Shown here: positions 2,773 to 62,901 of the stretch, piece by piece | How the letters are laid out: each line of letters opens with the position of its first letter | How positions within the stretch are numbered: position 1 is the first letter of the stretch | Source of the DNA: Setoptus koraiensis | Taxonomy: Eukaryota > Animalia > Arthropoda | NCBI GenBank assembly: GCA_048013815.1 | Contig: CM106586.1 | Location: 23,932,001-23,996,000, forward strand | Direction: 5' to 3' | Length of the DNA stretch: 64,000 bases | Notes under the pieces: model-generated | The model's input: only the letters and a program-made list of their open reading frames with translations | What the model was told of the DNA's origin: nothing | Databases searched by the model: none | Made by a program: the position numbers and the translations under genes

Positions 2773-4182
2773 TTATGAGATTAAAATGTTAGATTGAATC
2801 CAATCAATATAACTCGAAACTTTGGTATACACTCCAGGTGCCAAAGGTTGGCCGCAACCGTATCCGAATGAGACAATTCCCACTAATTGATATCTGTTAT
2901 CCATTATTCTAACCAAAGGACCCCCTGAGTCGCCTTGACAAGAGTCTTTTCCACCGGATACAAAACCAGCACATATTTGGTCGCCTATCACTCGAGAGCC
3001 ATATGTTTCCTTGCATCTTGATAAACTAACAACGGGAACTTGAACGTATCGTAGAACATTAGACAATGATCCTGAATTCTCTCTCGTCACACCCCAACCG
3101 CTAACAATGACTGGCTCGCCTTCCCTATACACTTGGTTTTTAACTGGCAGGCACGGCCTATTGACTGATCCATATCCGTCGCTAGTAAATTTATACTGGA
3201 TGACATCTTTTGTTCTGAGTATTGCAATATCGTGATCATTTGCATAGAAATTGCATGCATCGTATTTCTCATGAGGTATAATCTTCTCTATATCAACTTT
3301 AACTTCTCCATCTTCAAAGCGTATTGAATGATCGCCAATTGTTGCATGGATTCCATCTGTCTCTATGACGGCGGTAGTCAACTGACGACTATTACAAGCA
3401 GTCGTACAATGAGCTGCAGTAAGTATATGCCTCTCGTCCAAAACAACACCTCCACAAACTCCAGAGCCTCTTTTTGACATGATATTTAGTCTGACCTGGT
3501 AAGGGAATTCTCCTGGATCGGATTTACTTCCACCAACTATTCTAGTTTGAACCAATCTATCGCTACTATTTCCCTTCTTGTTAGCCTCACCACAGAAGAT
3601 ATCTGAACCTTGGCGTATGATCTTCGATGCAACTGGTGGCAGAGGATCCAGAATTGGCTTCATAGTTGTGACGATAATCGTTTCATTGTTGCTGCTATCT
3701 TGACTTGTTGTTGGAGTTGATGATATTGGCTCTTGGGTTGTTGAGACGGTAGAATTTAATTGGTTAGATACCTCCTGGTCGGTCACATTACTGCTTATTG
3801 GTTGATCTATTGCACCGATATCAATTTCGGGGTGTTTAGTGCTACTTGTTGCACTAGTAGCTTGATTGCCGATTATAAAATCTTGAGATTGTTTATTTTT
3901 TTGTGGAACAAGCAACGGTTGTTCCGTCGGGTCAAAATAAACACCGAACAAACGACTCTCGGGTACAATATCGACATTCTTGAAACTAGCAGGTAGATTT
4001 GTTGTTTTTATTGGTATCATCAACAAAGGTTCATCATCTTGAACCTTGATCAGTGAACTTATCTTGAGCCGAGTATTACTGGCGAATGAGGTTTGCGGAT
4101 ATTGGTGTTGCTGTTGATGAGATAAACCAACAGCAGAAAAGATTAGCAACGCTAAGAAGATGTGAAGAATTAGTGACATCAT
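2773..4182 (-). CDS. Secreted S1A trypsin-like serine protease with a long Ser/Thr/Gln-rich pro-region; intronless
   Basis: Signal-peptide-like N-terminus, activation site R-IVGG, catalytic triad TAAHC / HDIAIL / GDSGGP, and Asp in the S1 pocket (GKDSCQG). Confidence 0.95.
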   Translation of the reverse strand: MMSLILHIFLALLIFSAVGLSHQQQHQYPQTSFASNTRLKISSLIKVQDDEPLLMIPIKTTNLPASFKNVDIVPESRLFGVYFDPTEQPLLVPQKNKQSQDFIIGNQATSATSSTKHPEIDIGAIDQPISSNVTDQEVSNQLNSTVSTTQEPISSTPTTSQDSSNNETIIVTTMKPILDPLPPVASKIIRQGSDIFCGEANKKGNSSDRLVQTRIVGGSKSDPGEFPYQVRLNIMSKRGSGVCGGVVLDERHILTAAHCTTACNSRQLTTAVIETDGIHATIGDHSIRFEDGEVKVDIEKIIPHEKYDACNFYANDHDIAILRTKDVIQYKFTSDGYGSVNRPCLPVKNQVYREGEPVIVSGWGVTRENSGSLSNVLRYVQVPVVSLSRCKETYGSRVIGDQICAGFVSGGKDSCQGDSGGPLVRIMDNRYQLVGIVSFGYGCGQPLAPGVYTKVSSYIDWIQSNILIS

Positions 4183-4835: not shown

Positions 4836-6230
4836 TCAGTCATTTAACTTTTTCAACTCATGCACCATCAGTTCATCGGAGGTTCGTTCATTCTTGAAAT
4901 TTGTCAACATTCTAATCACTCTTTCAAGAGGAATCTCTTTATAAACCTCGTTAGTCATAATGGTCCTCAGAGTAACACTGTTATTTGTCCTCTCTCTCTG
5001 TCCGACAACTAACAAGAATTTATAATGGTTCTCCCAAGCCATCTTAACTTTTTTGTTTAACGTCTGGCCTGAATCAGATTCAAGGACTACCTCAAGATCT
5101 GCTTCGTTCAATTTATCTCTGACTGATTCCGCATAATCATAGAAAGTTTCTGACACACAAACAATTCTTATTTGTCGTGGAGATAGCCAAAACGGTAGAT
5201 TCCCTTTGAAATTTTCCAAAATTATAGCCATGAACCTTTCAACAGATCCAAAAATGGCACGATGTATCATGATAGGTCTCCTCTTGGAGCCATCTGGGCC
5301 ATTGTAGGTCAAATCGAATTGGATTGGTAATTGAAAATCCAATTGTATAGTAGCACATTGGTGAGGCTTGAGAAGCGAATCTGTCAAAGTTACATCAATC
5401 TTTGGTCCGTAGAATGCACCATCGCCCTCTTTTGATTTCCATCCATAGCCTGAATCATCAAGAGCTTGACGTAGCGCTGACTCGGCTTCATTCCATAACG
5501 ACAGTTCTCCCATATAAGATTCAGGCCTGGTTGAAAGACTAAATTCACATTCGAATGCAAACTGGTTGTAGACGAACTTGATAAAATCTATCGTTTTAGC
5601 TATCTCTGACCTTATTTGATCTTCCGTACAGAAGATGTGAGCATCATCTTGTTGGAATCTTCTGACTCTGAATAGACCAGTTAAATTACCGGAGGCCTCG
5701 TTTCTGTGTAGGGTACCGAAATCCGCGTATCTCAAAGGCAGATCGCGCCAAGATACATTTGAATTTTTAAATATCAAACAATGACCTGGACAATTCATGG
5801 GCTTCAGAGATAGATCTTCTTTTCCTTCCAGATGAAACATGTCATCTGCAAAATGATCCCAATGGCCAGATGTTTCCCATAACATACGGTTAAATATATT
5901 GGGTGATTTGACTATTTTTATGCCTCTTTTTCTATATTCTTTTCGTAGAAAATCTATCAAGCTATTGTAAATGTATGCACCGTCTGGTTTAAAGAAACAA
6001 GAGCCAGGACTTAGCTCGTGGAAGAAAAATAAGTTTTGGTCTCTTCCAATCTTCCTATGGTCATGATGGTTAGCCTCTGATTCGGGATTTGGCGTTGTTA
6101 CTTCAGATACTGGTGGTGTTGAATTTGCCACACACATGTTTCTTTTAAACCTCGATTGATCGACCCATCTACTCAATACAAGCTGCCTTAAAGGGCTGAC
6201 AAAATAAATGTAGTTTTTCCTGGAAATCAT
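4836..6230 (-). CDS. TARS: Threonyl-tRNA synthetase, catalytic plus anticodon-binding domains only, with an Arg-rich putative mitochondrial presequence; intronless
   Basis: DHRKIGRDQ.LFFFHELSPGSCFF, LKPMNCPGHC, HRNEASG.LTGLFRVRRFQQDDAHIFC, GAFYGPKID, TIQLDF, MIHRAIFGSVERF. First ATG is at 6230 (MISRKNY...); the track start at 6242 is TTG. Confidence 0.93.
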   Translation of the reverse strand: MISRKNYIYFVSPLRQLVLSRWVDQSRFKRNMCVANSTPPVSEVTTPNPESEANHHDHRKIGRDQNLFFFHELSPGSCFFKPDGAYIYNSLIDFLRKEYRKRGIKIVKSPNIFNRMLWETSGHWDHFADDMFHLEGKEDLSLKPMNCPGHCLIFKNSNVSWRDLPLRYADFGTLHRNEASGNLTGLFRVRRFQQDDAHIFCTEDQIRSEIAKTIDFIKFVYNQFAFECEFSLSTRPESYMGELSLWNEAESALRQALDDSGYGWKSKEGDGAFYGPKIDVTLTDSLLKPHQCATIQLDFQLPIQFDLTYNGPDGSKRRPIMIHRAIFGSVERFMAIILENFKGNLPFWLSPRQIRIVCVSETFYDYAESVRDKLNEADLEVVLESDSGQTLNKKVKMAWENHYKFLLVVGQRERTNNSVTLRTIMTNEVYKEIPLERVIRMLTNFKNERTSDELMVHELKKLND

Positions 6231-6861
6231 ACTGTCCTTCAATGTTGTACTCGACTAATGATTTTATCACCCAACGGTCCGATTCCTAATCGTTTCGCAA
6301 GTTTTCTTGCATGCTTCATGAGTGTCACGTGTCTCACATATAAACATTTCAAAGCACCCCCTAGTGGCCGATCAGATGCTTCACATGTTACTAGCGTGAT
6401 ATTTCTTCCGCACCGGTAAATATCAGTGTTCTCTAAGGCCATATTATTTCAGCCACAACTACTCAATTAAGAGAAATGGATAATTTCAAAAGCATCAAAT
6501 AACTCAATCCACATCCTTACGAATTACCTGGAAATTTGAAGGATCCGTGATCTTATCAGAAGATCTCCACAAGAGGATACCTACGGGCAGATGCCAGTGT
6601 CTCTTTTGTTGAGTTTTATTAGTGTATTTGTGTCTGACTACATATTCGAGTTCATAGATTTATTAATGCAATTCATTTGCCACGAATCCATATCGGCTCT
6701 ATCAGCTTTTCTATTCAAGAATACACGGTCGAATCATACATCCTCACAATAGGTCTAGTCACAGACAAACGTCCACTGAATTCAAATATACCGTCAGATA
6801 CTCCTTCACTCCAGACTATTTATATTACTATATACAGCCCAAATATTATACAAGTACGAAA

Positions 6862-8769
6862 ATGTCTTCAAATGAACCAGTCAATGTATACATCGCAGGT
6901 CGTTACAATAAATATTTAAGGGATCTCAGTCAGTCGCCTTGGATTGATAAAGAGGATGTACGAGTTAAAAATTCAATACAAGAAATCATAGAGGAAGGAA
7001 TATTCAAATTTATTCCTTGTGAAAAAGCCATATTCTCCAGCTCTGGTAGAGAGGATGTAGATGTAAGAATGCTTGGCAATGGTAGGCCGTTCGTATTTAA
7101 GTTAGTGAACCCAGATTCTAACATAACTATTGATCAGAACTGTTTGAATGAGATTGAATCTTATGTGAACACTAAATTTTTCGACAAAGTTAAGATAAGA
7201 TTTCTACAGTTAGTCAGCAAAGATACTGTGAACAAGAATATCAAGGATGGAGAGGAAAGTAAATCCAAAAAGTATCGTGCTCTATGTTGTTGCAGTAGAA
7301 GAATAACAGAAGCAGATATCGACCGTATATCAAGTATAAAGAATTTAGAAATCCACCAGAAAACTCCTGTTAGAGTTCTGCACAGGAGGACATTGGCTAC
7401 GAGAAAAAGAACCATTTTTAGCTTGAGTATTGGGATGCCTTTGCCTGGTGAATTCACGGAGTTGAAACCTCATTATCAAGATAAGACCTTCGCCCTGACA
7501 CTCGAGACTGAAGCTGGTACATATATAAAAGAATTTGTCCATGGGGATTTCGGTAGGACCCAGCCAAATTTATCTAGCTTACTTGGAGATTGTGAAGCAG
7601 ATCTGATGGAGTTGGACGTTTCGGAAATTTACATGGACTGGCCTTGTGATCCAAAAATGATTGCACAGACCGCTGGGCCTATGGATTTGGCAAATATCTC
7701 GAATAACATGGATTTGGCAAATATCTCGAATAACATGGATTTTACGCTACCAGAACTTTATGAACAAGCTGAGAGATGCCTTCTCAAAGCTGAATGTAAG
7801 CTAGCATCCGAGAGGCAGGATCTTCTTCAGACTGCAAGACACCTCCTAGAACGAGCAAATAAATTCGTTAGCAGCCTAGATTTATTTAGTAATAACGAGA
7901 CAATCGATGAAGTGGCAACCAATAATATTCGATATCTTCTCGTACCAGCTCTATTGTCAAATGTTTACATGAGGTTTGATCTTGGCCAGATGCAAACGTC
8001 TATGAGATTAGAAGTATTCTCAAAAGCTAAAGCCTACGCGGAAGATTTCCTGGAGAAAATCAAGCACTATGGTTTGGCAGATTTGAGAGTCGATCAAGCG
8101 CTTGACGAAGGTGTCAGAGAGGGATCTATAAATAATTTGTCCCAACTGGATATGATCGCGCAGATGGCGCAATCTAGGAAAGACAAGATTGACCAATATA
8201 ATACTGAGAAGGAACTAGAGCAAATGTTAGAACAAACAAAAGCTAGAATCGATTCCTCTAATGGTCAAATAGATGAAGAGGTTGTCAGAATCTACTATTT
8301 GAATCTTGTCAAAAAATGGACACATGAGACAGTTCGAGAATATAAGACCATTAAATCCGCCTTAAGACTTGAAGAGGGAATGAAGGATCATCCAAGTAGT
8401 GAGAGAACTAATAATAAGACAGCTCAGAATACGAGAAACACATTCACTTTGGTCAAATCAGATCTGCAAAAGCAAGTTTTTGGATTGGGGTACCCTAGCC
8501 ACCCCACTGTGACTGTAGATCAGTTCATCACCAAAAAAATCAATGATGGGGATTTGGCTTTCACCGCACAGAAAGATGTGTACTCAAATAGCTTACAGAG
8601 GTGGGCAGAGAATCCAGATCTTTTGAGGAATCAAGAGGAAGCTGAGCAAGAAGACAAAGAACGTGCTGAGGAAAACGAAGACGCCGCAGCAATTGCGAAA
8701 GCTCGACGTTGGGATGAATTCAAAGACGCCAACCCTAGAGGATCAGGAAACAGAAAAAATATGGGCTAA
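6862..8769 (+). CDS. PUS10-IGBP1: Single 635-aa ORF: Pus10 tRNA pseudouridine synthase catalytic domain (about aa 1-266, 6862-7659) fused in frame to alpha4/TAP42 (IGBP1; 7660-8769)
   Basis: Pus10 motifs: YIAGRYNKY, SSSGREDVDVRMLGNGRPF (catalytic Asp), QKTPVRVLHRR, AGTYIKEFVHGDFGRT, ELDV...DWP. TAP42 motifs: TLPELY, LDLFSNNETIDEVATNNIRYLLVP, FGLGYPS.PT.TV, KARRWDEFKD.NPRGSGNRKNMG. No stop codon or intron at the junction. Confidence 0.92.
   Translation: MSSNEPVNVYIAGRYNKYLRDLSQSPWIDKEDVRVKNSIQEIIEEGIFKFIPCEKAIFSSSGREDVDVRMLGNGRPFVFKLVNPDSNITIDQNCLNEIESYVNTKFFDKVKIRFLQLVSKDTVNKNIKDGEESKSKKYRALCCCSRRITEADIDRISSIKNLEIHQKTPVRVLHRRTLATRKRTIFSLSIGMPLPGEFTELKPHYQDKTFALTLETEAGTYIKEFVHGDFGRTQPNLSSLLGDCEADLMELDVSEIYMDWPCDPKMIAQTAGPMDLANISNNMDLANISNNMDFTLPELYEQAERCLLKAECKLASERQDLLQTARHLLERANKFVSSLDLFSNNETIDEVATNNIRYLLVPALLSNVYMRFDLGQMQTSMRLEVFSKAKAYAEDFLEKIKHYGLADLRVDQALDEGVREGSINNLSQLDMIAQMAQSRKDKIDQYNTEKELEQMLEQTKARIDSSNGQIDEEVVRIYYLNLVKKWTHETVREYKTIKSALRLEEGMKDHPSSERTNNKTAQNTRNTFTLVKSDLQKQVFGLGYPSHPTVTVDQFITKKINDGDLAFTAQKDVYSNSLQRWAENPDLLRNQEEAEQEDKERAEENEDAAAIAKARRWDEFKDANPRGSGNRKNMG
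7681..7742 (+). repeat. 27-bp in-frame tandem repeat (MDLANISNN x2 plus a partial unit) in the Pus10-IGBP1 linker
   Basis: ATGGATTTGGCAAATATCTCGAATAAC at 7681-7707 and 7708-7734; the duplicate copy near 24.97 kb has one unit. Confidence 0.95.
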
Positions 8770-8901: not shown

Positions 8902-11900
8902 CTACTCAAAGAAATTCAAGCATCTCGACAATAGTATAGTAGAGCAACATTCAAAAGCCAATGTGAACCCGATACGCAGATTTGATTTAATATCTTGAAG
9001 CTCAGTATCTTCCGGCCAAAGATCCAGAAGTAAACTGACGAAAGCTGTTCTTCTATATAATGAGAACTCATAACAAGAACTTCCATTGTCCAAGAGAATC
9101 CGACGATAACCAGAGACACCAAGTTTTTTCAGATCGGCCAGGATCAAGTTAGATGCTGCCCTCAGAACCGCTTTGTTGGTTTCTGAAATAGATATTTGAC
9201 ACACGGATGAGAGTGGCTCGTCACATATCAACTCAGGAACTGGCAAGTCTAAGTCGGCTAGTTTGATGCGTTTAGATCTACCACCAATAAATTCACGCAA
9301 AGCTTGCCTTGCCTCAGCAATGATGGCTACATAGTCTGCGCATGTGTTCAATTTGCATTTGTCGAACAATCTCTCTTGATCATCAATTTCGATTTCCTGT
9401 ATACTATTTGAGTGATCAAATACAATCTTAATCATCAATTTGTAACAATGTTCAAAATCTGTATCGCAATCAGGGCAGAAAATCTTTCCAACTATCACAT
9501 GTATGAACTTTTGAGTCTTGGTGCCTACTAATCCGCTGCAATTATATAGTCCATTCAACTTGGATACACTTTTCATGGCTAACAAACGAATAGAGTATTC
9601 ATCGTCGTTCATCAATTTGAATAATGCACTGAGTAAATTTACTAAAGCTTCCTGATAATTTATTTTCTGTTGTACTGAGAGGAAGTGGTGAAGAGTTGAC
9701 TTCAATATAATCGCAGCGACTTGTCTTGAAAGAATGCAACTTGATCCGTCTGCCACAGTTTCTATAAGTGATGACCAATCGTCGAAAACTTGCGAACTCG
9801 AATTTTGTTCCAATTGTGTTCGCTGGAACATAACTTCTACCAATTTGGACGAGCAAAATAGTGCGACGAACTTTGTGTCACATTCTGGGAGAATTTTAAC
9901 GAAAGTAGTCATGAATCGTAATTTGCATTCTAGACTTCCATCGTCGTCATGTGACCATTTCAATTGGTCGAAGTTTATCTCATCCGCTAACATGGACATA
10001 ATCGCAAGTAGTTCGATTGCCCTCGGAGTGTTACTAATCTTTGCAGAAAATAGTTGTTCGACGCTCCTAGGTTGGAACTCTGGCAAGTCCCTCAATTCAA
10101 ACATTGATTTGTGTATTTTCTCAGATTTGTGCAGGTCGATGTTCATGAATTTCTTATGAATATAGTTCGTATATAAGTTTCTGTCATATTCACTTTGATT
10201 TATGTCTTTTGATTTATCGAATATTGTTTCATGTAGGATGAGGGAATCAATATCTAGTTTATCTAAAATACTTTCCAACTCGTCATTGGGCCGCACCGTC
10301 GCAAAAGAGAATCGAATCCATCTTATTAATGATCTATGAAAGTTGGTACTCAAGGTCCGGTTTGGTTGTTCCGATAGCAAAGCGACGAAAAGGTTCTCAA
10401 TGTCACGGTTAGCCAACTTTCCAGTTTCGAGACCGGACATCAAGAAGATCTGGAGGTATTTAAAAGCAAACTCCTCCAAGGCGGGGTCGTTTTGATTCAA
10501 GTTGAATAATGTGTTCTCCAAAAGGTTCAGCTGGCACGATACGCATTCTTGTCCGTATTCTGAGCTAGATAAGCGTATTATATAAGTCTCGATAAGATTG
10601 AACAACTCACACATTAGACGATAAGAAAAGGGGTGATGCTCATGAAATAAGCTGATCATAGCCTGTATCACTTGTTGCGAAACAAAACTAATGTTCTTAA
10701 TAGCAACGTTAAAGTAGGGTTGGTCACGTAAATCTTGCTGGCTTAACCATTCTTTTAGTATAAGTATGGATCCATGCAAATGGTTTTCTTTGATTGTTTT
10801 GAGTTTGCTAGCATCAATGAAAAGCTCTTTGATATTCTCCAGGGTAGTGATTTTGCTTGGTAAGGAATGGCATGGTAAGGAATTATCCAGAGATGCATAG
10901 TTGATGCAGAAGTACTCCAATCTCACACATAGTTTTGCTGCTATTTTTCTCAAGTTTAAATCAGGACATCTGAAGCAGACTTCCGCCATAGGTCCAACGA
11001 ATGGTAGGATAACTTTTTCGTAAGTATAGTTGACGCTAGGATTGATTGATGGGTGCAGTCTGTTAAGAAGAATAACTATCGTGTGGATTGATGCAAGGTG
11101 ATGGCGACTTTCTAGTCCGTAGGAGAGATACTTTAAGAATTTTTCAATCATCCTGGGATAACGTGAAAAGAAGCATTCAAAAGACAGTTTGTTCTTTCTG
11201 TGAATGTTATTCTTCAATCTACTACAACCAAATGTTCGGCCTACTACTGCACTCAATAGCATATTAGCGCAATTTCTAATCGGGAATGATTCGGAACCAA
11301 AACTCTCTATGGTTACGATGAAAGTTTGCTCAATGTAAGGCGCAACTTTTTCGGCAAGCTGATGCTCGTTGATAAGGGCTTTCAGAATATTTAAGGAATG
11401 TACTTTTTGGTACTCTTCAGTGTTTTGGTCGTTTAGAATACTGAACAGACAATCGACAACCCATCTCAGGTTTTCTGATTCATGCCGATGTTCAGATACC
11501 AGTATAGCTTGAATCATAAACGGGAGGCCTGCAGATCTACGTGTTGTGTAGGCTTTCAAGAACTTAACCTTACCTTCTATCATGTCAGAGTTGTCTCCAG
11601 TGTTATATTCACCTTTGAAATCAAGCATGATAGATCCCAATGAGTCCAATAATAGTTTTCGACAACGTTCATCCGGCCACACTCTCTTGGTCAACGCGAG
11701 AAACCCATTATAGGCTTGTTCAAACGCCCCCCGATGACGCAAATTTCTTAGATAGTGGTTGAAGAAAGATATCATTTTTGTTATACCGTCGAAATCAATC
11801 AGAGGCTCATGAGTGGATTGAAATGCTCGGGTTGCCAGGGTTCCAGGACCAGGGCTAGGATTGGGGTGCATCCACCACAGTCGATTACACATTAGGCCCA

Positions 11901-20837: not shown

Positions 20838-20960
20838 TTATGCCGGGCCAAGATTAGATGTGCAACTTTTATCTAATGTAATTAGGAACTGATAGCTCGG
20901 AAACATTAGATCAGAAGGTTTGCTCAGCGGATTCAACTTTTTTATTTGGAGTCTAATTAT
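20838..20960 (+). repeat. 123-bp direct copy of 25334-25456 (115-bp core with TTAT on both sides)
   Basis: TTATG(C/A)CGGGCCAAGATTAGATG...GGAGTCTAATTAT, two substitutions; inserted in a (TTA)n run that is empty at about 27050-27060. Confidence 0.92.
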
Positions 20961-21197
20961 TATTACTCACATTTCCACTAAGCCTCTATAGAGGTAGAAT
21001 TCTAAAGGTAGAATTTCTATATATATAATGTGTATAGGAAGTCAGGCTTAGTTTTGTTCAATCAGTCAGTCAGTCACCCAGCCAGCCAGCCAGTCAACTC
21101 GGCAGACATAAAAGAATCTGCAGTGGAAATACGTTCACCTTGAAGTTAAGATTTTCTATTCTCGAACAAGCTTTGGCTGTAGTATGAGTAAGTTGGC

Positions 21198-22185
21198 TCT
21201 GAAAGCCCTTATCAACGAGCATCAGCTTGCCGAAAAAGTTGCGCCGTACATTGAGCAAACTTTCATCGTAACCATAGAGAGTTTTGGTTCAGAATCATCT
21301 GCTTGAGATGTCCTGATTTAAATTTGAGAAAAATAGCAGCAAAACTATGTGTGAGATTGGAGTACTTCTGCATCAACTATGCATCTCTGGATAATTCCTT
21401 ACCATGCCATTCCTTACCAAGCAAAATCACTACCCTGGAGAATATCAAAGAGCTTTTCATTGATGCTAGCAAACTCAAAACAATCAAAGAAAACCATTTG
21501 CATGGATCCATACTTATACTAAAAGAATGGTTAAGCCAGCAAGATTTACGTGACCAACCCTACTTTAACGTTGCTATTAAGAACATTAGTTTTGTTTCGC
21601 AACAAGTGATACAGGCTATGATCAGCTTATTTCATGAGCATCACCCCTTTTCTTATCGTCTAATGTGTGAGTTGTTCAATCTTATCGAGACTTATATAAT
21701 ACGCTTATCTAGCTCAGAATACGGACAAGAATGCGTATCGTGCCAGCTGAACCTTTTGGAGGACACATTATTCAACTTGAATCAAAACGACCCCGCCTTG
21801 GAGGAGTTTGCTTTTAAATACCTCCAGATCTTCTTGATGTCCGGTCTTGAAACTGGAAAGTTGGCTAACCGTGACATTGAGAACCTTTTCGTCGCTTTGC
21901 TATCGGAACAACCAAACCGGACCTTGAGTACCAACTTTCATAGATCATTAATAAGATGGATTCGATTCTCTTTTGCGACAGTGCGGCCCAATGACGAGTT
22001 GGAAAGTATTTTAGATAAACTAGATATTGATTCCCTCATCCTACATGAAACAATATTCGATAGATCAAAAGACATCAATCAAAGTGAATATGACAGAAAA
22101 TTATATACGAACTATATTCATAAGAAATTCATGAACATCGACCTGCACAAATCTGAGAAAATACACAAATCAATGTTTGAATTGA
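21198..22185 (+). pseudogene. THADA: Duplicated internal THADA fragment (inverted copy of 10092-11386) with a 307-bp deletion
   Basis: LKALINEHQL...GSES|CLRCPDLNLRK...SMFEL; lacks start and C-terminus; substitutions N>D, K>R, N>K; deletion junction at about 21299. Confidence 0.93.
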
Positions 22186-24322
22186 TTGGGAGGGCGATGG
22201 CTTTGTAACTATTATTGGAAACCTAGCACACGTTTCAAATGAAGATGGGCGAATCTTGGAAGAGCCTGTTGTTTTGGATGAAGCCGAATTAGAGGCAATC
22301 AAAGATCTCAAGGAACTGCTCATAGGCAAAACGGAAATAATGGTCGACGAACTGGTCAAGTCATAGCCCATCATATTTTACTATTTAAAACTTTTATTGA
22401 TATGAACAACGTTTCATAAAATCTAACAAGAAGTTGACTCCTCTAGTCTAATTTTTTTGTGAGCATGTGGCTGCGATGGGGGTGGCCGGATAGTTATCAT
22501 GTTGTTCTTCAGGTCCGGAGGGATTGTTGAATTGTGTGTAAGTTTGAAGGTGTCAAAGTCGATCTCTTGTCGCAATATACCACTCATGACAAATTCTGTT
22601 TGCTCGATACCTGTTATAGTGGGAAGGTTGAGAGATAGTATTAGTAACATTGAATTGACAAAGTAAAGAGTTAAGATATCATGATGATGAGCTTGTATAC
22701 TTACTTGCTCCATATGAAACGAGATTCTCACATAAATGGTAATCATTCTCGCAAGAAATTACAACCAGTTGTTTGTCTGCTAGTTTCAGTTGTTCGAATT
22801 GCATTCTACTAGGTGGCTTCTTGAAGACGACTTGACCACCTGCGGATTCAATCATTGGTTTTAAAATAGATGGCGCTGGTTTGACTCCAGGGGTAACAAA
22901 AAATACTAAATCTTTGAATAGAAGACACTTCCTAGGATTATCCTCGAGATCCAAAATAGGTCGCACACTTGACGAGGGGTTTTGTTCTGATAATGAGGCA
23001 TGTTGCGCTTCTCTTCTGGCACGTCGCCGTAGAGATTGTTTCATATTGAAGCAGAATTTATCCTCGTTCTCTTTGTCATGGAGAAGAAAATCCTTCTCGT
23101 CAAGTAACATATTAGCACGATAGGATTCAGTTAGCCAGTTCGTTTTGAGAATGTACCTCGCGTAATTATAAGCACAAATGAACGTTGTGGTTCGACATAC
23201 TCGATCTGTTATCAGGTGCGTGCATTTCACTGGATCCTCGACTACTTTGGCACCCAATTTAGAGGCTAGGTTCTTCAATTCTTCTAGTCTACTTGCCCCG
23301 ATATGTGTAAATGTGATGAATATATTATTTTGGTATCTGGAAGAAGACGATTTGGGTGTTAGAGTCAATTGCCTCTGGTTAGTTGCGGTGCCAGTATGAT
23401 TCGTGATCGACGAGGCCGGTGCCATATTAGAGGCGGAACTGTTGGAATTATTGCATCTATCTGCCGGTGGGTTGGTAGATGATTCAGAACTTTGCTTGAC
23501 ACAGTCTTCATTTTTTACATCACCTTCCTGTTTCATGAGATTTTGTTCATTCCGTTTATCTGGAACTTCTATAACTCCATCTTCACTGTCCAGCTTGATC
23601 ATACCGTTGGTCTTATTGGGAGGGATCTCTTCCGATGTATTACTTCTCATGGTGCAACTTGTCTCCAACTTGATACAAGGCAATTTGCTCACACTCTCAA
23701 TTTCTTCTTTCATGACTTTTATAGGATTCAACCAGGGAGACATGACATCTTGAACACTGATGTATGATGATATCTTGAGAGGTTTTTCAACCTTAAAAAG
23801 CTGATAGCGCGGTAAGACCAAAGAAGAAGGGTCTATGGATCCTAGAAGAACATCGGTCAGCCATTGGGCATTGACAATGGAGATTTTCCAATGCACGGCC
23901 TTCTTATATTTTTGACCTCCAACCGAGCGACAAATTAGAATAGTATTCTTGGGACTTAGATAATCCGTGTATCGAGCTCCACTCCTTAAAATCATCTCGC
24001 GTAGATCGACACGTTCTTTGCCTTCAAAGTTGGTAAGAGATATTATATGGTTTTTACAAGGAGCATTATCTTTCGTGTACGGCAGTGGTATATGTATAGC
24101 CTTCCATGGTGAATCCAGTTTACGCTGGGCAATAACGTCATTGACCCAATAAATAGTGACACATCGCTTACCCTCGCGAAATGCTTGTTGGTAAATGTCT
24201 GTGGATCGAGTCTCGCAAATGAGGTGAGTGCAATCTGACAATAGCTCAGTTATCTTTCCTCCATTTTGTTTGATTATGGCAAACCAGTGATTTAAACAAT
24301 CTCTAGAGGTATTTTCATGTTC
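22186..24322 (-). pseudogene. PAXIP1: Direct copy of 37140-39276: 3' part of PAXIP1 (BRCT3-6, last intron and exon) plus the 3' 180 bp of the RAD54B-N gene
   Basis: Constant offset of 14954; the translated ORFs are identical to those at 37.1-39.3 kb; 5'-truncated. Confidence 0.93.
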
Positions 24323-25228
24323 TCTCACTAGTTGGATGATTCTTCATTCCCTCTTCAAGTCTTAAGGCGGATTTAATGGTCTTATATTCTCGAACTGTCT
24401 CATGTGTCCACTTTTTGACAAGATTCAAATAGTAGATTCTGACAATCTCTTCATCTATTTGACCATTAGAGGAATCGATTCTAGCTTTTGTTTGTTCTAA
24501 CATTTGCTCTAGTTCCTTCTCAGTATTATATTGGTCAATCTTGTCTTTCCTAGATTGTGCCATATCCAGTTGGGACAAATTATTTATAGCCTCGTCAAGC
24601 GCTTGATCGACTCTCAAATCTGCCAAACCATAGTGCTTGATTTTCTCCAGGAAATCTTCCGCGTTGGCTTTAGCTTTTGAGAATACTTCTAATCTCATAG
24701 ACGTTTGCATCTGGCCAAGATCAAACCTCATGTAAACATTTGACAATAGAGCTGGTACGAGAAGATATCGAATATTATTGGTTGCCACTTCATCGATTGT
24801 CTCGTTATTACTAAATAAATCTAGGCTGCTAACGAATTTATTTGCTCGTTCTAGGAGGTGTCTTGCTGTCTGAAGAAGATCCTGCCTCTCGGATGCTAGC
24901 TTACATTCAGCTTTGAGAAGGCATCTCTCAGCTTGTTCATAAAGTTCTGGTAGCGTAAAATCCATGTTATTCGAGATATTTGCCAAATCCATAGGCCCAG
25001 CGGTCTGTGCAATCATTTTTGGATCACAAGGCCAGTCCATGTAAATTTCCGAAACGTCCAACTCCATCAGATCTGCTTCACAATCTCCAAGTAAGCTAGA
25101 TAAATTTGGCTGGGTCCTACCGAAGTCCCCACGGACAAATTCTTTTATATATGTACCAGCTTCAGTCTCGAGTGTCAGGGCGATAGTCTTATCTTGATAA
25201 TGAGGTGGTGAAGGAAATCCTCAACTCC
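24319..25228 (-). pseudogene. PUS10-IGBP1: Diverged fragment of the Pus10-IGBP1 ORF (inverted copy of 7458-8408), truncated at both ends
   Basis: Junction still has no stop codon; in-frame indels of 27, 15 and 12 bp; FVHGD>FVRGD, Y>N, V>I, D>N, S>T; ends ...TSERT* at the PAXIP1 junction. Confidence 0.92.
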
Positions 25229-25333: not shown

Positions 25334-25456
25334 TTATGACGGGCCAAGATTAGATGTGCAACTTTTATCTAATGTAATTAGGAACTGATAGCTCGGAAAC
25401 ATTAGATCAGAAGGTTTGCTTAGCGGATTCAACTTTTTTATTTGGAGTCTAATTAT
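25334..25456 (+). repeat. Second copy (probable donor) of the 123-bp element at 20838-20960
   Basis: Direct sequence match. Confidence 0.92.
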
Positions 25457-28400
25457 TTGCTGCTTGATTAAACATACAGCCATACACAGATACAGATTCC
25501 CAGTTACCTATTTGGATGATAAGAAAAATTGACGTCAGCTAATTTATATTGTTATTATATTGAATCTTATATCAGATTTTCTTGGCTAATATTCAAATGA
25601 TAAACGTCATGATTACATGTCAGGATTGGTGCTCCGAGACAAACAAACGAAAATTCTTCTCTTTTCCATGTAGAATATCCATATCTTAATAAGATAATCA
25701 TATTCCTTCGTTGATTAAATATTTAGATAACATTCAATCAGCGTGATGCTTAATTATACGAGGTGGTGACGGATAAGAACTCATTGATTGGATCAACTTT
25801 GTTTCTAAATTCAGCCTCTCCGTCGCTTGCTCTCTCTCACTCTCTGTCTCTGTTTCTCTTTCTCACGCACACTTTCGTAGACACATTTACAATGATGGAT
25901 GGGCTTTACAAAACAGCCTTAGTCGCCATTTGCTGATTGTTGGCCGGAAGAGGTGCACACAGGAATCGACCTGCCCAGCTCCGGTTTTTCTTTCGGTCTA
26001 ATTATAAAAGCATAAACAAAAGTTGAACTTCTCATCAAAGATCTGTCTTCCCCCTTGCTGACAATCTTTCTCTACTGTATCTGTCTATCTAATTCACCCG
26101 CTCGCTCGCTCACTCAATCATTCATTTGCCAAAGCATGTGTCTATTAATAAAAACCCGCATTAGTTGTTGTCTCTCTATCACTATTCGTCACTTTGGGTT
26201 TGTACAATTTGAATTCTAACATCTCATCACTCAAGTGGTTTGCGCTGAATAATTGGAGAGAAGAAGAATAGTAATAATAATAGGAAGAAGAGGACAACGA
26301 AGAAGACGAGAGAAAAATAACGATTCATAACAAGACTTGTTGCCTGTTATTGTTGATATTGGTTCATTCTTTATAATTCATCAAACAGTCTATTGTGTTA
26401 GTGTGTGTGTCTGTGCGAACGAACTAATCTGGGAAAAACTGACTTAGTTTAATACTCTTGTGAGCCAACTTACTCATTCTACAGCCAAAGCTTGTTCGAG
26501 AATAGAAAATCTTAACTTCAAGGTGAACAACCATGCCAGTTAGTTAACGTATTTCCACTGCAGATTCTTTCATGTTCTTACATATGAACAACCTGTTAGC
26601 TACCTGCCTGCTTACTTGTCTGCCGAGTTGACTGCCTGGTTGGCTGACTGACTGACTGATTGAACAAAACTAAGCCTGACTTCCTATACACATTATATAT
26701 ATAGAAATGTCTACTCGATTCCCTGTCCTGTGTTGAGTGATAAAGACCGTGAATTTTAATAAATACTATGAATAGATACCTCCGGAGGTATTAATTAGCC
26801 CATTTGATAAGGTGTCACGGGTAGCAAATTGCACTACATTGAAATGTAGCTGTAGAATCGTCATCGTCATCAGTATGTTGTTGTTGTTGTTGTTGCTTTG
26901 GGTTGTCGTCATTAGTGTTCAATAAAGCCAGTAAATACTGTATAAGCCAATGAGTACTGTATAAGTAAGTGCAGTATTAGAATTAGAAAAGTAACGCAAG
27001 CAGCATTTGTGTGCAGTGGAAGTATAGTGGCTTAGTGGAAATGTGAGTAATAATAATAACAATAAAGACGAATTGGAGAACTACTTCTCTACTACTTCTC
27101 TAACATTATTTTACAATAAAATAGGCACCAATAATAAGGGCTTGTTAAAGCTTGTTATGATGATGATCAGTAATGAGTTTGTTGCAGTTGAGATATTTCG
27201 ATGAAACTCTCTCTCTTATTATTCTATTATTCTATTATTTTCTTATTCATGCTCTCTGCACCTGTCGAAAAGCCTTACGTTGACTCGTCTGACGCGCGTG
27301 CTATTGTCGTCCCCCTTCCGATCGACATTGTGCACGTTTCCTCTATTCATGCAGGAATTGAGTTGAACATTTGTTGCTGCATTCGCCGCCACCAACCGCT
27401 ATTATTTTCCCCCTCCCCTTCATAGATGATCAAATGGAAAAAAGTTGGCGGGCACCCCCACCGAGACTCGTCATTCTCTTATTCTCGATTCTTTTTCAAG
27501 CGCCAATGAACACATTGGCATTTTTTTCCCCAAGACACCACCGCAATCCCTGCAAGTACATGTGACTTCACCGTCATCTCTGCAATAGCTTAAAGTAACG
27601 GCTGCTGTAGCTGTAACTGTTTCTTTCCGTTACTTTACCACGTTCATATCACACCGGCTGCCGCTATTTTCCAGTTTCATCTTTGTATCCCTTATGTGTT
27701 CCCTGCCTTCCCCCCCCCCCATTGTCACTTGCCAGTATCTGATCAACGTTGTTGTTGTCACTGTACAAGTCACTGTCGTCATTATCATATGATATCTTGC
27801 CACTAAGGTAACTTGCGGTAAGCTTGCAAAATTAGCCAAAGCTTGGTAAATTATAATAATAAATAAATAAAAAAAAAGTAGATAGACAGATTAGTTAGAA
27901 TTGACAGTATCAGTGGAGTTATTATTGGCGGGCTGTTTTAGTGTACTGGTTCTTTCTGTCTCTGTCTAGATCTTACTTTCTAGGGAGAGGTGGTATCCTC
28001 AAGAAGAATATACCAATATATACCTAACTACACATCTTACACAGTACGTGAACCGTTCTACAGCTGTTTTGGCATGTGTACGTCGACAGCGAAGTCTTGC
28101 CTTCACAATTGTTGCATATATTTTTATTAATAGTGTTAATCTACTAACACCATGAATAGTAACAAAAACGCGTAAGCAAACACTAGAACACCCTCGGAGG
28201 AGAGATTTACATGAATGGCATGAGGGGATTATTAATATCTACTACGTGAAAGCAGATAGCTGCACATATGTATATTCAAAACGCACACACACACACACAC
28301 ACAAGACTAATAATATAATTGTAGCGACTAATTCTACTTCCGACATTTCCATTCTCTACAACTGGCGCTACGACTGGCGCTACGAGTGGCGCTACTACAT

Positions 28401-60633: not shown

Positions 60634-62901
60634 AGGAGGAGGGGAGGAGAGGGGAGAGGGGGAGGGAGTAGGGGAGGGAGTAGGGAGAGGGAGGGAGTGG
60701 AGAGGGAGGAGGGAGAGAGAGGAGGAGAGGGGAGGGGGAGAGTAGGAGGTTTTGAGGAAGGAGGGAGAGAGAGGAGGGGGGAGAGAGGGGAGGTGTAGGG
60801 GAGGAGGAGAGGGGAGAGGGGAGGGTGAGGAGGGAGGTTGAGAGGGGGGGAGGGGGAGGGTGGAGAGGAGGGAGAGTGGAAGGAGGGGAGGGAGGGAGGA
60901 GAGGAGGGGAGAGGGAGAGAAGGGGGAGGGAGGAGGAGGGAGGGGAGAAGGGGAGGAGGGGAGTAGGGGAGGAGGGAGGAGAGGGGAGAGAGGGAGGAGG
61001 GGAGAGGAGGTAGAGGGGAGGGAGGAGGGGAAGGAGGAGTAGAGGAGAAGGGAGGAGGAAGGAGGAGGGAGGAGTAGGAGGGGAGGAGAGGGGAGGAGGG
61101 GGAGGGAGGAGAGGAGGGGAGAGAGGGAGGAGGGAGGAGGAGAGGGGGAGGAGAGGGAGGGGAGGGGGAGGGGAGGAGAGGGAGGGAGGAGGAGAGAGAG
61201 GGGGAGAGGGAGAGGAGGAGAGGGGGGAGAGGGGAGGAGAGGAGGGAGGGGAGAGGGGGGGAGAGGGAGGGGGAGGAGGAGAGGGGAGAGAGGAGGGGAG
61301 AGGAGAGGAGAGGGGAGGGAGGGGAGAGGGAGAGGAGGGGAGAGAGGGGAGGGGAGGGAGGAGGGGAGAGGGAGGAGAGGAGGGAGGGGGAGGGGAGAGG
61401 GGAGGAGGGGGAGGGGAGGGAGGAGGGGAGGAGAGGGAGGAGGGGAGAGGAGAGGGAGGGGAGAGGAGGAGGGGAGGGAGAGGAGGGAGAGAGGAGGAGG
61501 GAGGGAGAGAGGGAGGAGGGGAGGAGGGAGAGGGGGAGGGAGGGGAGGAGAGGGAGGGGGAGAGGGAGGGAGAGGAGGGGAGAGGAGGAGGGAGAGGAGG
61601 GAGAGGGGGGGAGGAGAGGGGAGGAGAGGGGAGGGGGAGAGGGAGGGGAGGAGGGGGAGAGGGGAGGGAGGAGGGAGGAGGGGAGGGAGAGGGGGAGGAG
61701 AGGAGAGGGAGGAGGGGAGGGAGGAGGGAGAGAGGGGGGGAGGAGGGAGAGGGAGAGGGGGGAGAGGAGGGGGGAGGGAGGAGGGAGAGGGAGGGAGGGG
61801 GGAGGGAGAGAGGGAGGAGGGGGGGAGGAGGGGAGGGAGGGGGGAGAAGGAGGGAGGAGAGGAGGGGAGGGGGAGGAGGGGAGGAGAGGGGGAGGGAGGG
61901 AGGGGGAGAGGAGGGGAGAGAGGAGAGGGGGGAGAGGGGAGGGAGGAGGGAGGGGGAGGAGGGGAGGGAGAGGAGGGGGAGGAGGAGGGGAGGAGGGAGG
62001 GAGAGGGAGGAGGGGGAGGGGGGAGAGGGAGAGGAGGGGAGGAGGAGGGGGGGAGGGAGAGGAGGAGGGGAGAGGGGAGGGGAGGAGAGGGAGGGAGAGG
62101 GAGGGGGGGAGGGGGGAGGGAGGGAGAGGGGAGAGAGGAGGGGAGAGGGAGGGGAGGAGAGGAGGGGGGGAGGAGGGAGGGAGGAGGGGGGAGAGGGAGA
62201 GGGGAGAGAAGGGGGAGGGGGAGGGGGAGGAGAGAGGGGAGGGGAGGAGGGAGGAGGGGAGAGGAGGAGGGGAGGGGAGGAGGGGGAGGAGAGGAGGAGG
62301 GGGAGAGGAGGAGGGAGGAGGGGAGGAGAGGGGAGGGAGGGAGAGGAGGAGGGAGAGAGGGGGGGGAGAGAGGGAGGGAGGAGAGGGGAGGAGGGGGAGG
62401 AGGGGAGGGGGGAGGGAGGGGAGAGGGAGGAGGGGGAGAGAGGGGGAGAGGGAGAGGGGGGGAGAGAGGGAGGAGAGGAGGGATAGGAGGGTGAGAGGTT
62501 AGAGGGAGGGTAGGAGTAGAAGGGAAGAGGATTTGGGGTAGAGAGAGGAGAGAGGAGAGAGGAGGTGGGAAGTAGGAGTAGGGAAGAGGGGAAGAGAGGA
62601 GAGGGGGGAGAGGAGAGGAGAGTAGGAGTAGGAGAGATAGAGGGGGAAGGAGGAGGAGTGGAGGGAGGAGGGGAAGGAGAGGAGTAGAGGGATGATAGAA
62701 GGGAGGAGATGGGAGGGAGAGAGGGATGAGGGAGGGAGGAGGGAGAGTGAGAAGAGAGAGAGAGGGTTAGAGAAGAGGAGAGGAGGGTAGGAGAGGAGAG
62801 TAGGGAGAGAGGGAGAGGGAGAGGAGAGAGAGGGTGGAGGGAGGGTTGGAGAAGGAGGAGAGGAGGGAGTAGAGAGGTTAGAGGGAGGGTAGGAGAGGAG
62901 G
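60634..62901 (+). repeat. About 2.3-kb aperiodic G/A polypurine tract inside the intron
   Basis: Only A and G from 61076 to 62483; scattered T in the flanks; no fixed period. Confidence 0.9.

Follow-up and report, generated by a model that had tools for sequence, protein, structure and literature searches.

A Pus10–TAP42/alpha4 gene fusion in the mite Setoptus koraiensis and its relatives

Pus10 makes pseudouridine 54 and 55 of tRNA, and alpha4/Tap42 binds and stabilises the catalytic subunits of the phosphatases PP2A, PP4 and PP6. Here we describe a gene that joins the two in a 64,000-nucleotide (nt) stretch of the genome of the mite Setoptus koraiensis (GenBank assembly GCA_048013815.1, contig CM106586.1, positions 23,932,001 to 23,996,000 of the forward strand; hereafter the window): a single open reading frame (ORF) runs from the catalytic domain of Pus10 through a linker into TAP42/alpha4 (IGBP1). 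In the literature searched, no paper couples Pus10 with Tap42, and the two papers that name both Pus10 and IGBP1 are gene lists; the architecture is undescribed there, although a single UniProt entry has it, named for just one of the two halves. An initial annotation of the window, made from the letters alone, had called the two known only as separate genes, which holds for this literature but not for the databases: a fused protein of Aceria tosichella (A0A6G1SBK9) is already in UniProt, where its name, tRNA pseudouridine(55) synthase, ignores the TAP42 half.

The accessory domain of Pus10 contains a THUMP-related fold; human PUS10 modifies tRNA without a CCA end, and the accessory domain may matter less than was first thought (PMC9957541). 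In human alpha4, residues R155, K158, Y162 and E214 are each required for binding of the PP2A catalytic subunit (PP2Ac), and alpha4 stabilises latent PP2Ac and is reported to be essential for the survival of cells (PMC3644067). The genomes of eriophyoid mites are extremely compact (PMC7738191).

Compared with human PUS10, the window protein has the catalytic domain from end to end (residues 9–261 against human 289–525), with REDVD, the conserved GTYIKEFVHGDFGRT block and the C-terminal DWP all present, and its Pus10 half is about 45–53% identical to metazoan Pus10. Unlike full-length Pus10, it lacks the N-terminal Zn-binding/THUMP-related domain (about 250 residues, Pus10_N_euk) and has a C-terminal TAP42 domain. 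Compared with alpha4/IGBP1/Tap42, it has the full TAP42 profile, a helical N-terminal domain predicted with high confidence, the equivalents of R155/K158/Y162 and the conserved tail ending GNRxNMG; unlike alpha4, its TAP42 part lacks an N-terminus of its own and is preceded by about 290 residues of Pus10 and linker. The Pus10 proteins of Tetranychus urticae (P0220, 291 residues) and Brevipalpus obovatus (P0221, 273 residues), confirmed by Pfam, likewise consist of Pus10_C only, begin at the same point of the domain and close with the natural short tail that follows DWP, but they stand alone without TAP42. Equally truncated Pus10_C proteins occur at the unfused eriophyoid loci L013 and L014, 62–69% identical to the fused proteins; these and the TAP42 genes of L009 and L011 differ from the window gene in being separate genes at separate loci.

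The fused reading frame and its orthologues

This locus holds a real, conserved and old gene fusion of eriophyoid type, specific to its lineage. We consider it probable that its product is a bifunctional protein of two independent modules whose joining is tolerated under genome compaction. The frame is one stop-free ORF holding both Pfam domains at full length, as the initial annotation had read it (Table 1). The motifs that it named all lie where it had placed them: REDVD, ELDV (residues 250–253), DWPCDPK (259–265), MIAQ (266–269), the MDLANISNN repeats and the terminal GNRKNMG. A phmmer search of the window protein against solved structures returned human PUS10 (2V9K, E value 6e-62, residues 289–525 of a 530-residue chain), as well as mouse and human alpha4 (3QC1, 4IYP) and yeast Tap42 (2V0P). 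Pus10 homology extends to DWP (residues 259–261, positions 7636–7644), near the natural C-terminus of Pus10, and the PP2Ac-binding helical part of the TAP42 domain would correspond to about residues 296–510, as judged from alignment and structure model.

The N-terminal Zn/THUMP part, which the initial annotation could not recognise upstream of the ORF, is indeed lacking: tblastn with eight full-length Pus10 proteins found none in the 64-kb window and none in five orthologous loci, and the window protein gave no Pfam match to the N-terminal accessory domain (PF21237 in eukaryotes). The tblastn matches begin at about residue 245–290 of the full-length queries and extend to about 5 residues from their C-termini. 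An upstream exon encoding the N-terminal part was considered and rejected, as tblastn was blank and the 419-nt gap to the neighbouring gene is too short.

Searches with both halves in related mites show the fusion conserved, with separate copies in some lineages. A whole-protein search returned two full-length relatives with both Pfam domains, 47–50% identical over 99% of the query: P0001 (647 residues), taken from a public read-set assembly, and A. tosichella A0A6G1SBK9 (635 residues, 47% identity), an orthologue that shares the architecture and the start (MS.E...AGRY) of the window protein and differs from it in its linker and in having no methionine at the ancestral TAP42 start. The remaining Pus10 matches of that search, which include proteins of the horseshoe crab Tachypleus, of ticks and of further mites, all retain the N-terminal domain and lack TAP42. 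Among the best 150 proteins listed by an exhaustive HMMER run on 1.84 billion representative sequences, none matched both halves; in that clustered library some members are masked by their representatives, and neither P0001 nor P0002 is itself on the list. No protein from outside this mite clade matched both halves.

Further orthologues became apparent at the DNA level. Loci L002, L005 and L006/L007 initially appeared as two adjacent genes, with a phase-0 GT..AG intron of 127–192 nt directly after ELDV[ML]; removal of this intron yields uninterrupted fused ORFs of 626–630 residues. In L002, L005 and L006 the TAP42 exon also encodes the last 8–10 residues of Pus10 (E..DWPP), and a further seven TAP42 ORFs, taken from other assemblies, open with this Pus10 tail in the same exon. 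The shared open junction was thereby seen in six taxa inspected at the protein or DNA level and in these seven further ORFs; 18 pairs of Pus10_C and TAP42 ORFs on contigs of identical length give an indirect sign of adjacency. A phase-0 intron after LDVM occupies the identical codon boundary in the full-length Pus10 of Oppia nitens (L003, about 11517–11617). Judged by this position, the intron is an ancient Pus10 intron, so the fusion would have joined the ancient last exon of Pus10 to TAP42. The L005 gene keeps three introns (3956–4147, 5092–5191 and 5341–5428) and the window gene has none; the two genes are 95% and 84% identical at the amino-acid level in their two halves, with a synonymous divergence (dS) of about 0.85. 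Relative to L005, the window gene is, on this comparison, the outcome of a recent and complete intron loss at an unchanged locus.

It could be argued that an assembly or base-call error, or chance read-through of two adjacent genes, has produced the appearance of a fusion, given the very tight spacing of genes in these genomes and the known problem of merged gene models (PMC7738191). We give this explanation practically no credence: the same continuous frame is present in independent assemblies of at least 12 taxa; contigs of an independent DNA run (X1) match the window junction without differences; and the exon that carries TAP42 also carries the end of Pus10. The earlier conclusion that the chimeric gene is real, and not a base-call error, is borne out by the orthologues, by the completeness of both halves and by purifying selection on them.

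Constraint, predicted structure and the number of products

Both halves of the gene are under purifying selection. Between the window and L005 (dS 0.74–0.92), the ratio of nonsynonymous to synonymous rates (dN/dS) is 0.028 for Pus10_C, 0.104 for TAP42 and 0.446 for the linker; across distant taxa, identity is 58–63% for Pus10_C, 43–47% for TAP42 and 8–18% for the linker. Across five DNA loci, the reading frame of the linker contains 0 stops and its other frames 0–3, and the probability of no stop given its composition is 0.09–0.29 per locus. Because dN/dS is low and the linker is free of stops, both halves would thus be functional and the junction held open. The ratio for Pus10_C shows that the domain is in use, with pseudouridylation itself as the predicted activity, and that for TAP42 shows constraint, with binding of PP2A/PP4/PP6 as the predicted function. 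No processing motif common across taxa appears in the linker alignments; no dedicated motif search was run.

An AlphaFold2 model built on a 41-row alignment has a mean predicted local distance difference test score (pLDDT) of 82.6 and a predicted template modelling score (pTM) of 0.47. The pLDDT exceeds 90 for residues 8–262 and 296–510 (about 95 over the latter) and falls below 50 for residues 271–289 and for parts of the TAP42 C-terminal region. The top four Foldseek matches of the model are 2V9K, which comes first, 4IYP, 3QC1 and 2V0P. D65 aligns with the first aspartate of the human PUS10 REDVD, and this catalytic aspartate is invariant in the fused orthologues aligned (four proteins in one set, six in another). 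In the TAP42 half, R439 and K442 are identical in all six aligned fused taxa and the Y446 column holds Y or F; the column of alpha4 E214 aligns to alanine, in a weakly aligned stretch at the end of the domain.

These features suggest that the gene would be translated as one polypeptide of about 73 kDa, in which two independently folding modules are separated by a disordered linker of 30–45 residues. The first module would be a catalytic-only Pus10 with an intact active site, expected from knowledge of its family to form tRNA pseudouridine 54/55; the second would be a complete alpha4/Tap42 that has kept its PP2Ac-contact residues and is expected, on the same grounds, to bind PP2A/PP4/PP6. Both modules would do their ordinary jobs side by side.

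Alternatively, a transcript starting inside the gene may give rise to a protein of TAP42 alone, about 344 residues long and beginning at Met292 (position 7735), either in addition to the 73-kDa fusion or in its place; in relatives, the intron that precedes the fused exon could be where such a transcript starts. In stand-alone TAP42 proteins the start lies 12 residues ahead of the aromatic residue (Tyr/Phe) of the motif L..L[YF], which reads LPELY in the window, and a methionine at or beside this ancestral start is kept in 9 of the 13 fused lineages, in a linker otherwise conserved at the low level given above. Met292 is that methionine in the window and lies in a good start context; in L002, L005 and L006 the intron sits just upstream of the exon carrying linker and TAP42; and an internal transcript would offer a route to the stand-alone TAP42 of L009 and L011. 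However, the other four fused lineages have lost this methionine, and two of them (P0133 and P0155) have no methionine at all between DWPP and TAP42, so that the TAP42 part of that gene can come only as a fusion. In addition, the window gene has no intron to house a promoter, the in-frame, stop-free linker is kept everywhere although a purely bicistronic arrangement would not require it, and the residues around the methionine (MD.SE) may be conserved as part of the TAP42 fold. We regard a two-product locus as an outside chance overall: an extra TAP42-only product is possible in some lineages, and in others the fusion, as read from the linkers, must supply TAP42. The internal start proposed in the initial annotation, Met266 of MIAQ (ATG at 7657–7659), is not conserved, and the idea of a second product keeps its standing through the conserved Met292 instead.

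Distribution, origin and fission of the fused gene

A search with the Pus10 half returned about 50 related ORFs, all of which begin with the catalytic domain. The mite clade of the Pus10 tree (55 rows, support 100/99) divides into two groups, one formed by Fragariocoptes together with the pair of window and L005, the other by the remaining 52 rows; fused forms occur on both sides of this split, and unfused forms are nested among fused ones. The truncated Pus10 of Fragariocoptes setiger ends at a stop of its own, and the 0.9 kb of contig downstream of it contains no TAP42. In L013/L014, the truncated Pus10 stops 11 codons past DWPP and is followed by a PHD-finger gene, which likewise lies downstream of the fused gene in L006; after the stop, the frame of L013 (4592–4625) goes on to KNDY, which agrees with the L006 linker at the equivalent position. 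Judged by this match, the KNDY is a relic of the linker and the footprint of a gene fission. The stand-alone TAP42 genes of L009 and L011 adjoin a saposin gene, and in the TAP42 tree their sequences nest inside the fused-TAP42 clade. L010 had also been taken for a stand-alone TAP42 and was withdrawn, as its contig extends only 212 nt upstream.

The most economical reading of these trees is an ancestral fusion followed by at least one later fission. Several fissions have probably taken place, of which only the L013 case has both synteny and a linker relic. Outside the eriophyoids, Pus10 and TAP42 were separate genes in the eight loci and proteins checked. Oppia nitens and a metagenomic mite scaffold carry full-length Pus10 with no TAP42 neighbour, and Halotydeus destructor carries TAP42 alone. 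The idea that the fusion grew out of an ancient adjacency of Pus10 and TAP42 was rejected, since none of these three shows the genes side by side. T. urticae and B. obovatus group with the full-length Pus10 of Leptotrombidium, so that their loss of the N-terminal part was probably independent; spider and flat mites would thus probably represent a second loss of the THUMP-related accessory domain.

We infer that the fusion arose from a Pus10 gene that already lacked the N-terminal Zn/THUMP domain, when its last exon lost the stop codon and became continuous with the TAP42/alpha4 coding region. The fusion would then be a tolerated by-product of extreme genome compaction, and not an obligatory functional coupling. 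That fission has been observed argues that the coupling of tRNA modification to PP2A-family phosphatases is not obligatory.

A functionally coupled chimera would work differently: alpha4 would tether a PP2A-family phosphatase, place Pus10 under TOR/PP2A control or offset the lost THUMP domain. Most of the eriophyoid lineages sampled have kept the fusion, which occurs on either side of the deepest branching of the Pus10 tree, both halves are strongly constrained, and Pus10 lacks the accessory domain in every fused form, all of which would fit such a chimera. However, spider mites and unfused eriophyoids manage with a catalytic-only Pus10 that has no TAP42 attached; at least one lineage has gone back to separate genes; AlphaFold2 predicts no fixed contact between the domains, as the low pTM and the disordered linker indicate; the linker evolves almost freely; and no paper in the literature searched links Pus10 with Tap42/IGBP1. 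We consider this explanation very improbable. The related suggestion that TAP42 stands in for the missing Pus10 N-terminus, made in the initial annotation, is not supported: catalytic-only Pus10 stands alone in T. urticae, B. obovatus, F. setiger and L013, and TAP42 sits at the opposite end of the protein, behind a disordered linker.

Several points nevertheless weigh against a single fused protein whose joining is merely tolerated. The two oligo-dT/polyA RNA runs sampled gave no reads on the locus and none from the organism, and so do not bear on its expression. The sole 'RNA?' contig that crosses the junction (7483–7691, 209 nt, 96% identical, depth 2.7) may be DNA, and it comes from a different strain or species. 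The Aceria entry probably derives from a transcriptome assembly, and the merging of adjacent genes in transcript contigs is documented for these mites (PMC7738191), because of which the case rests on the continuity of the ORF. The ancestral TAP42 methionine, where retained, fits a continued use of the internal start. Finally, that most lineages have retained the fusion for so long could point to an advantage rather than mere tolerance.

Surroundings of the gene and meaning of the fusion

The coordinates of the gene, its parts and its partial copy are collected in Table 1. Upstream of the fusion, 419 nt from its start codon, lies a divergent gene resembling threonyl-tRNA synthetase (4836–6442, minus strand). 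This neighbour is common to the window and L005, and tRNA-synt_2b and HGTP_anticodon domains are seen in the L005 orthologue. The downstream neighbours are unlike: a 1533-residue ORF in the window and a Cpn60/TCP1 gene in L005.

Table 1. Positions of the fusion gene, its parts and its partial duplicate in the window
Feature	Position	Strand	Details
Whole fusion ORF, intronless (N-truncated Pus10, linker, TAP42/alpha4)	6862–8769	+	635 residues plus stop
Pus10 catalytic domain, Pfam Pus10_C (PF21238)	6889–7629	+	residues 10–256; E value 7e-83; profile 1–231 of 232
REDVD motif, residues 63–67	7048–7062	+	D65 at 7054–7056
Lost-intron site, S254/E255 codon boundary (7623/7624)	7621–7626	+	phase-0 intron there in L002, L005, L006 and Oppia nitens Pus10
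Linker, residues 262–295	7645–7746	+	fast-evolving, predicted disordered, in frame and open in all
Two tandem copies of a 27-nt unit (MDLANISNN ×2) in the linker, residues 274–291	7681–7734	+	
Met292, context AACATGG, possible internal start	7735–7737	+	matches initiator position of stand-alone TAP42
TAP42/alpha4 domain, Pfam TAP42 (PF04177)	7747–8736	+	residues 296–625; E value 6.5e-57; profile 1–346 of 346
SRKDKIDQY, residues 438–446	8173–8199	+	R439/K442/Y446 = human alpha4 R155/K158/Y162 by alignment
Truncated inverted duplicate of 7467–8408	24319–25206	−	end of Pus10_C, linker and first ~220 residues of TAP42; 98.6% identical

The window also holds what the initial annotation took for a diverged second copy of the gene (24319–25228), which is in fact a nearly identical, truncated and decaying partial duplicate. 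It differs from its source by 12 mismatches and by in-frame deletions of 27, 15 and 12 nt, is truncated at both ends, and at 24.9 kb carries a single MDLANISNN unit against two in the main gene. The majority of its substitutions change an amino acid, among them an H-to-R change in the invariant FVHGDFGRT motif of Pus10. The duplication is real, because the depth of the X1 contigs doubles exactly across 7467–8408. On account of the truncated ends, the mostly nonsynonymous changes and the hit in an invariant motif, we rejected the duplicate as a functional paralogue; it is one decaying piece of a wider patchwork of local duplications. As a derivative of the first copy, it is weak independent evidence for the junction. 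The earlier argument that a second stop-free junction speaks against a base-call error therefore holds in its conclusion, given the orthologues in other mites, but not in the evidence it named.

Other blocks of 95–99% identity, inverted or direct, pair 10092–10979 with 21298–22185, 11286–11386 with 21198–21298, 20838–20961 with 25334–25457, and 21013–21199 with 26462–26708; the region from 20.8 to 26.7 kb is a mosaic of copies from nearby genes, and the Pus10–TAP42 fragment is one piece of it. A variant contig of run X1 (record 4) covers 7623–7715 with 5 differences across the junction, at a depth of 10 against about 230, and a similar variant occurs at 7651 and 7653 in the 'RNA?' run X17; this low-depth variant might stem from a minor allele, from a third copy or from a related strain. 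Elsewhere in the window, 60636–62900 is a 2.3-kb, nearly pure polypurine tract of GGA/GAG type with a GC skew of about 0.77, in which Tandem Repeats Finder reports degenerate periods of 21–42 and about 365 nt.

An adaptive fusion that couples pseudouridylation of the tRNA T-loop to the control of PP2A-family phosphatases is, in our estimation, very improbable. If it were true, alpha4–PP2Ac would serve to recruit, stabilise or regulate a Pus10 without its accessory domain, or tRNA or other RNA would be brought to the phosphatase; TOR/PP2A signalling would be physically and directly linked to a tRNA modification enzyme; and, by Rosetta-stone logic, a hidden interaction between Pus10 and alpha4/PP2A would be predicted in other animals.

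In conclusion, Pus10 and TAP42 are well-known and near-universal animal proteins, and their fusion, which most of the lineages sampled in a mite superfamily have kept open and in frame, is an architecture new to the literature searched. For the annotation of these genomes it serves as a warning, since gene models usually split it into two ORFs or take their name from a single half. The catalytic-only forms, under very strong constraint here and in spider mites, provide a natural test of Pus10 function without the THUMP-related domain, and the locus illustrates cleanly how genes can fuse, lose introns and later split again during extreme genome streamlining.

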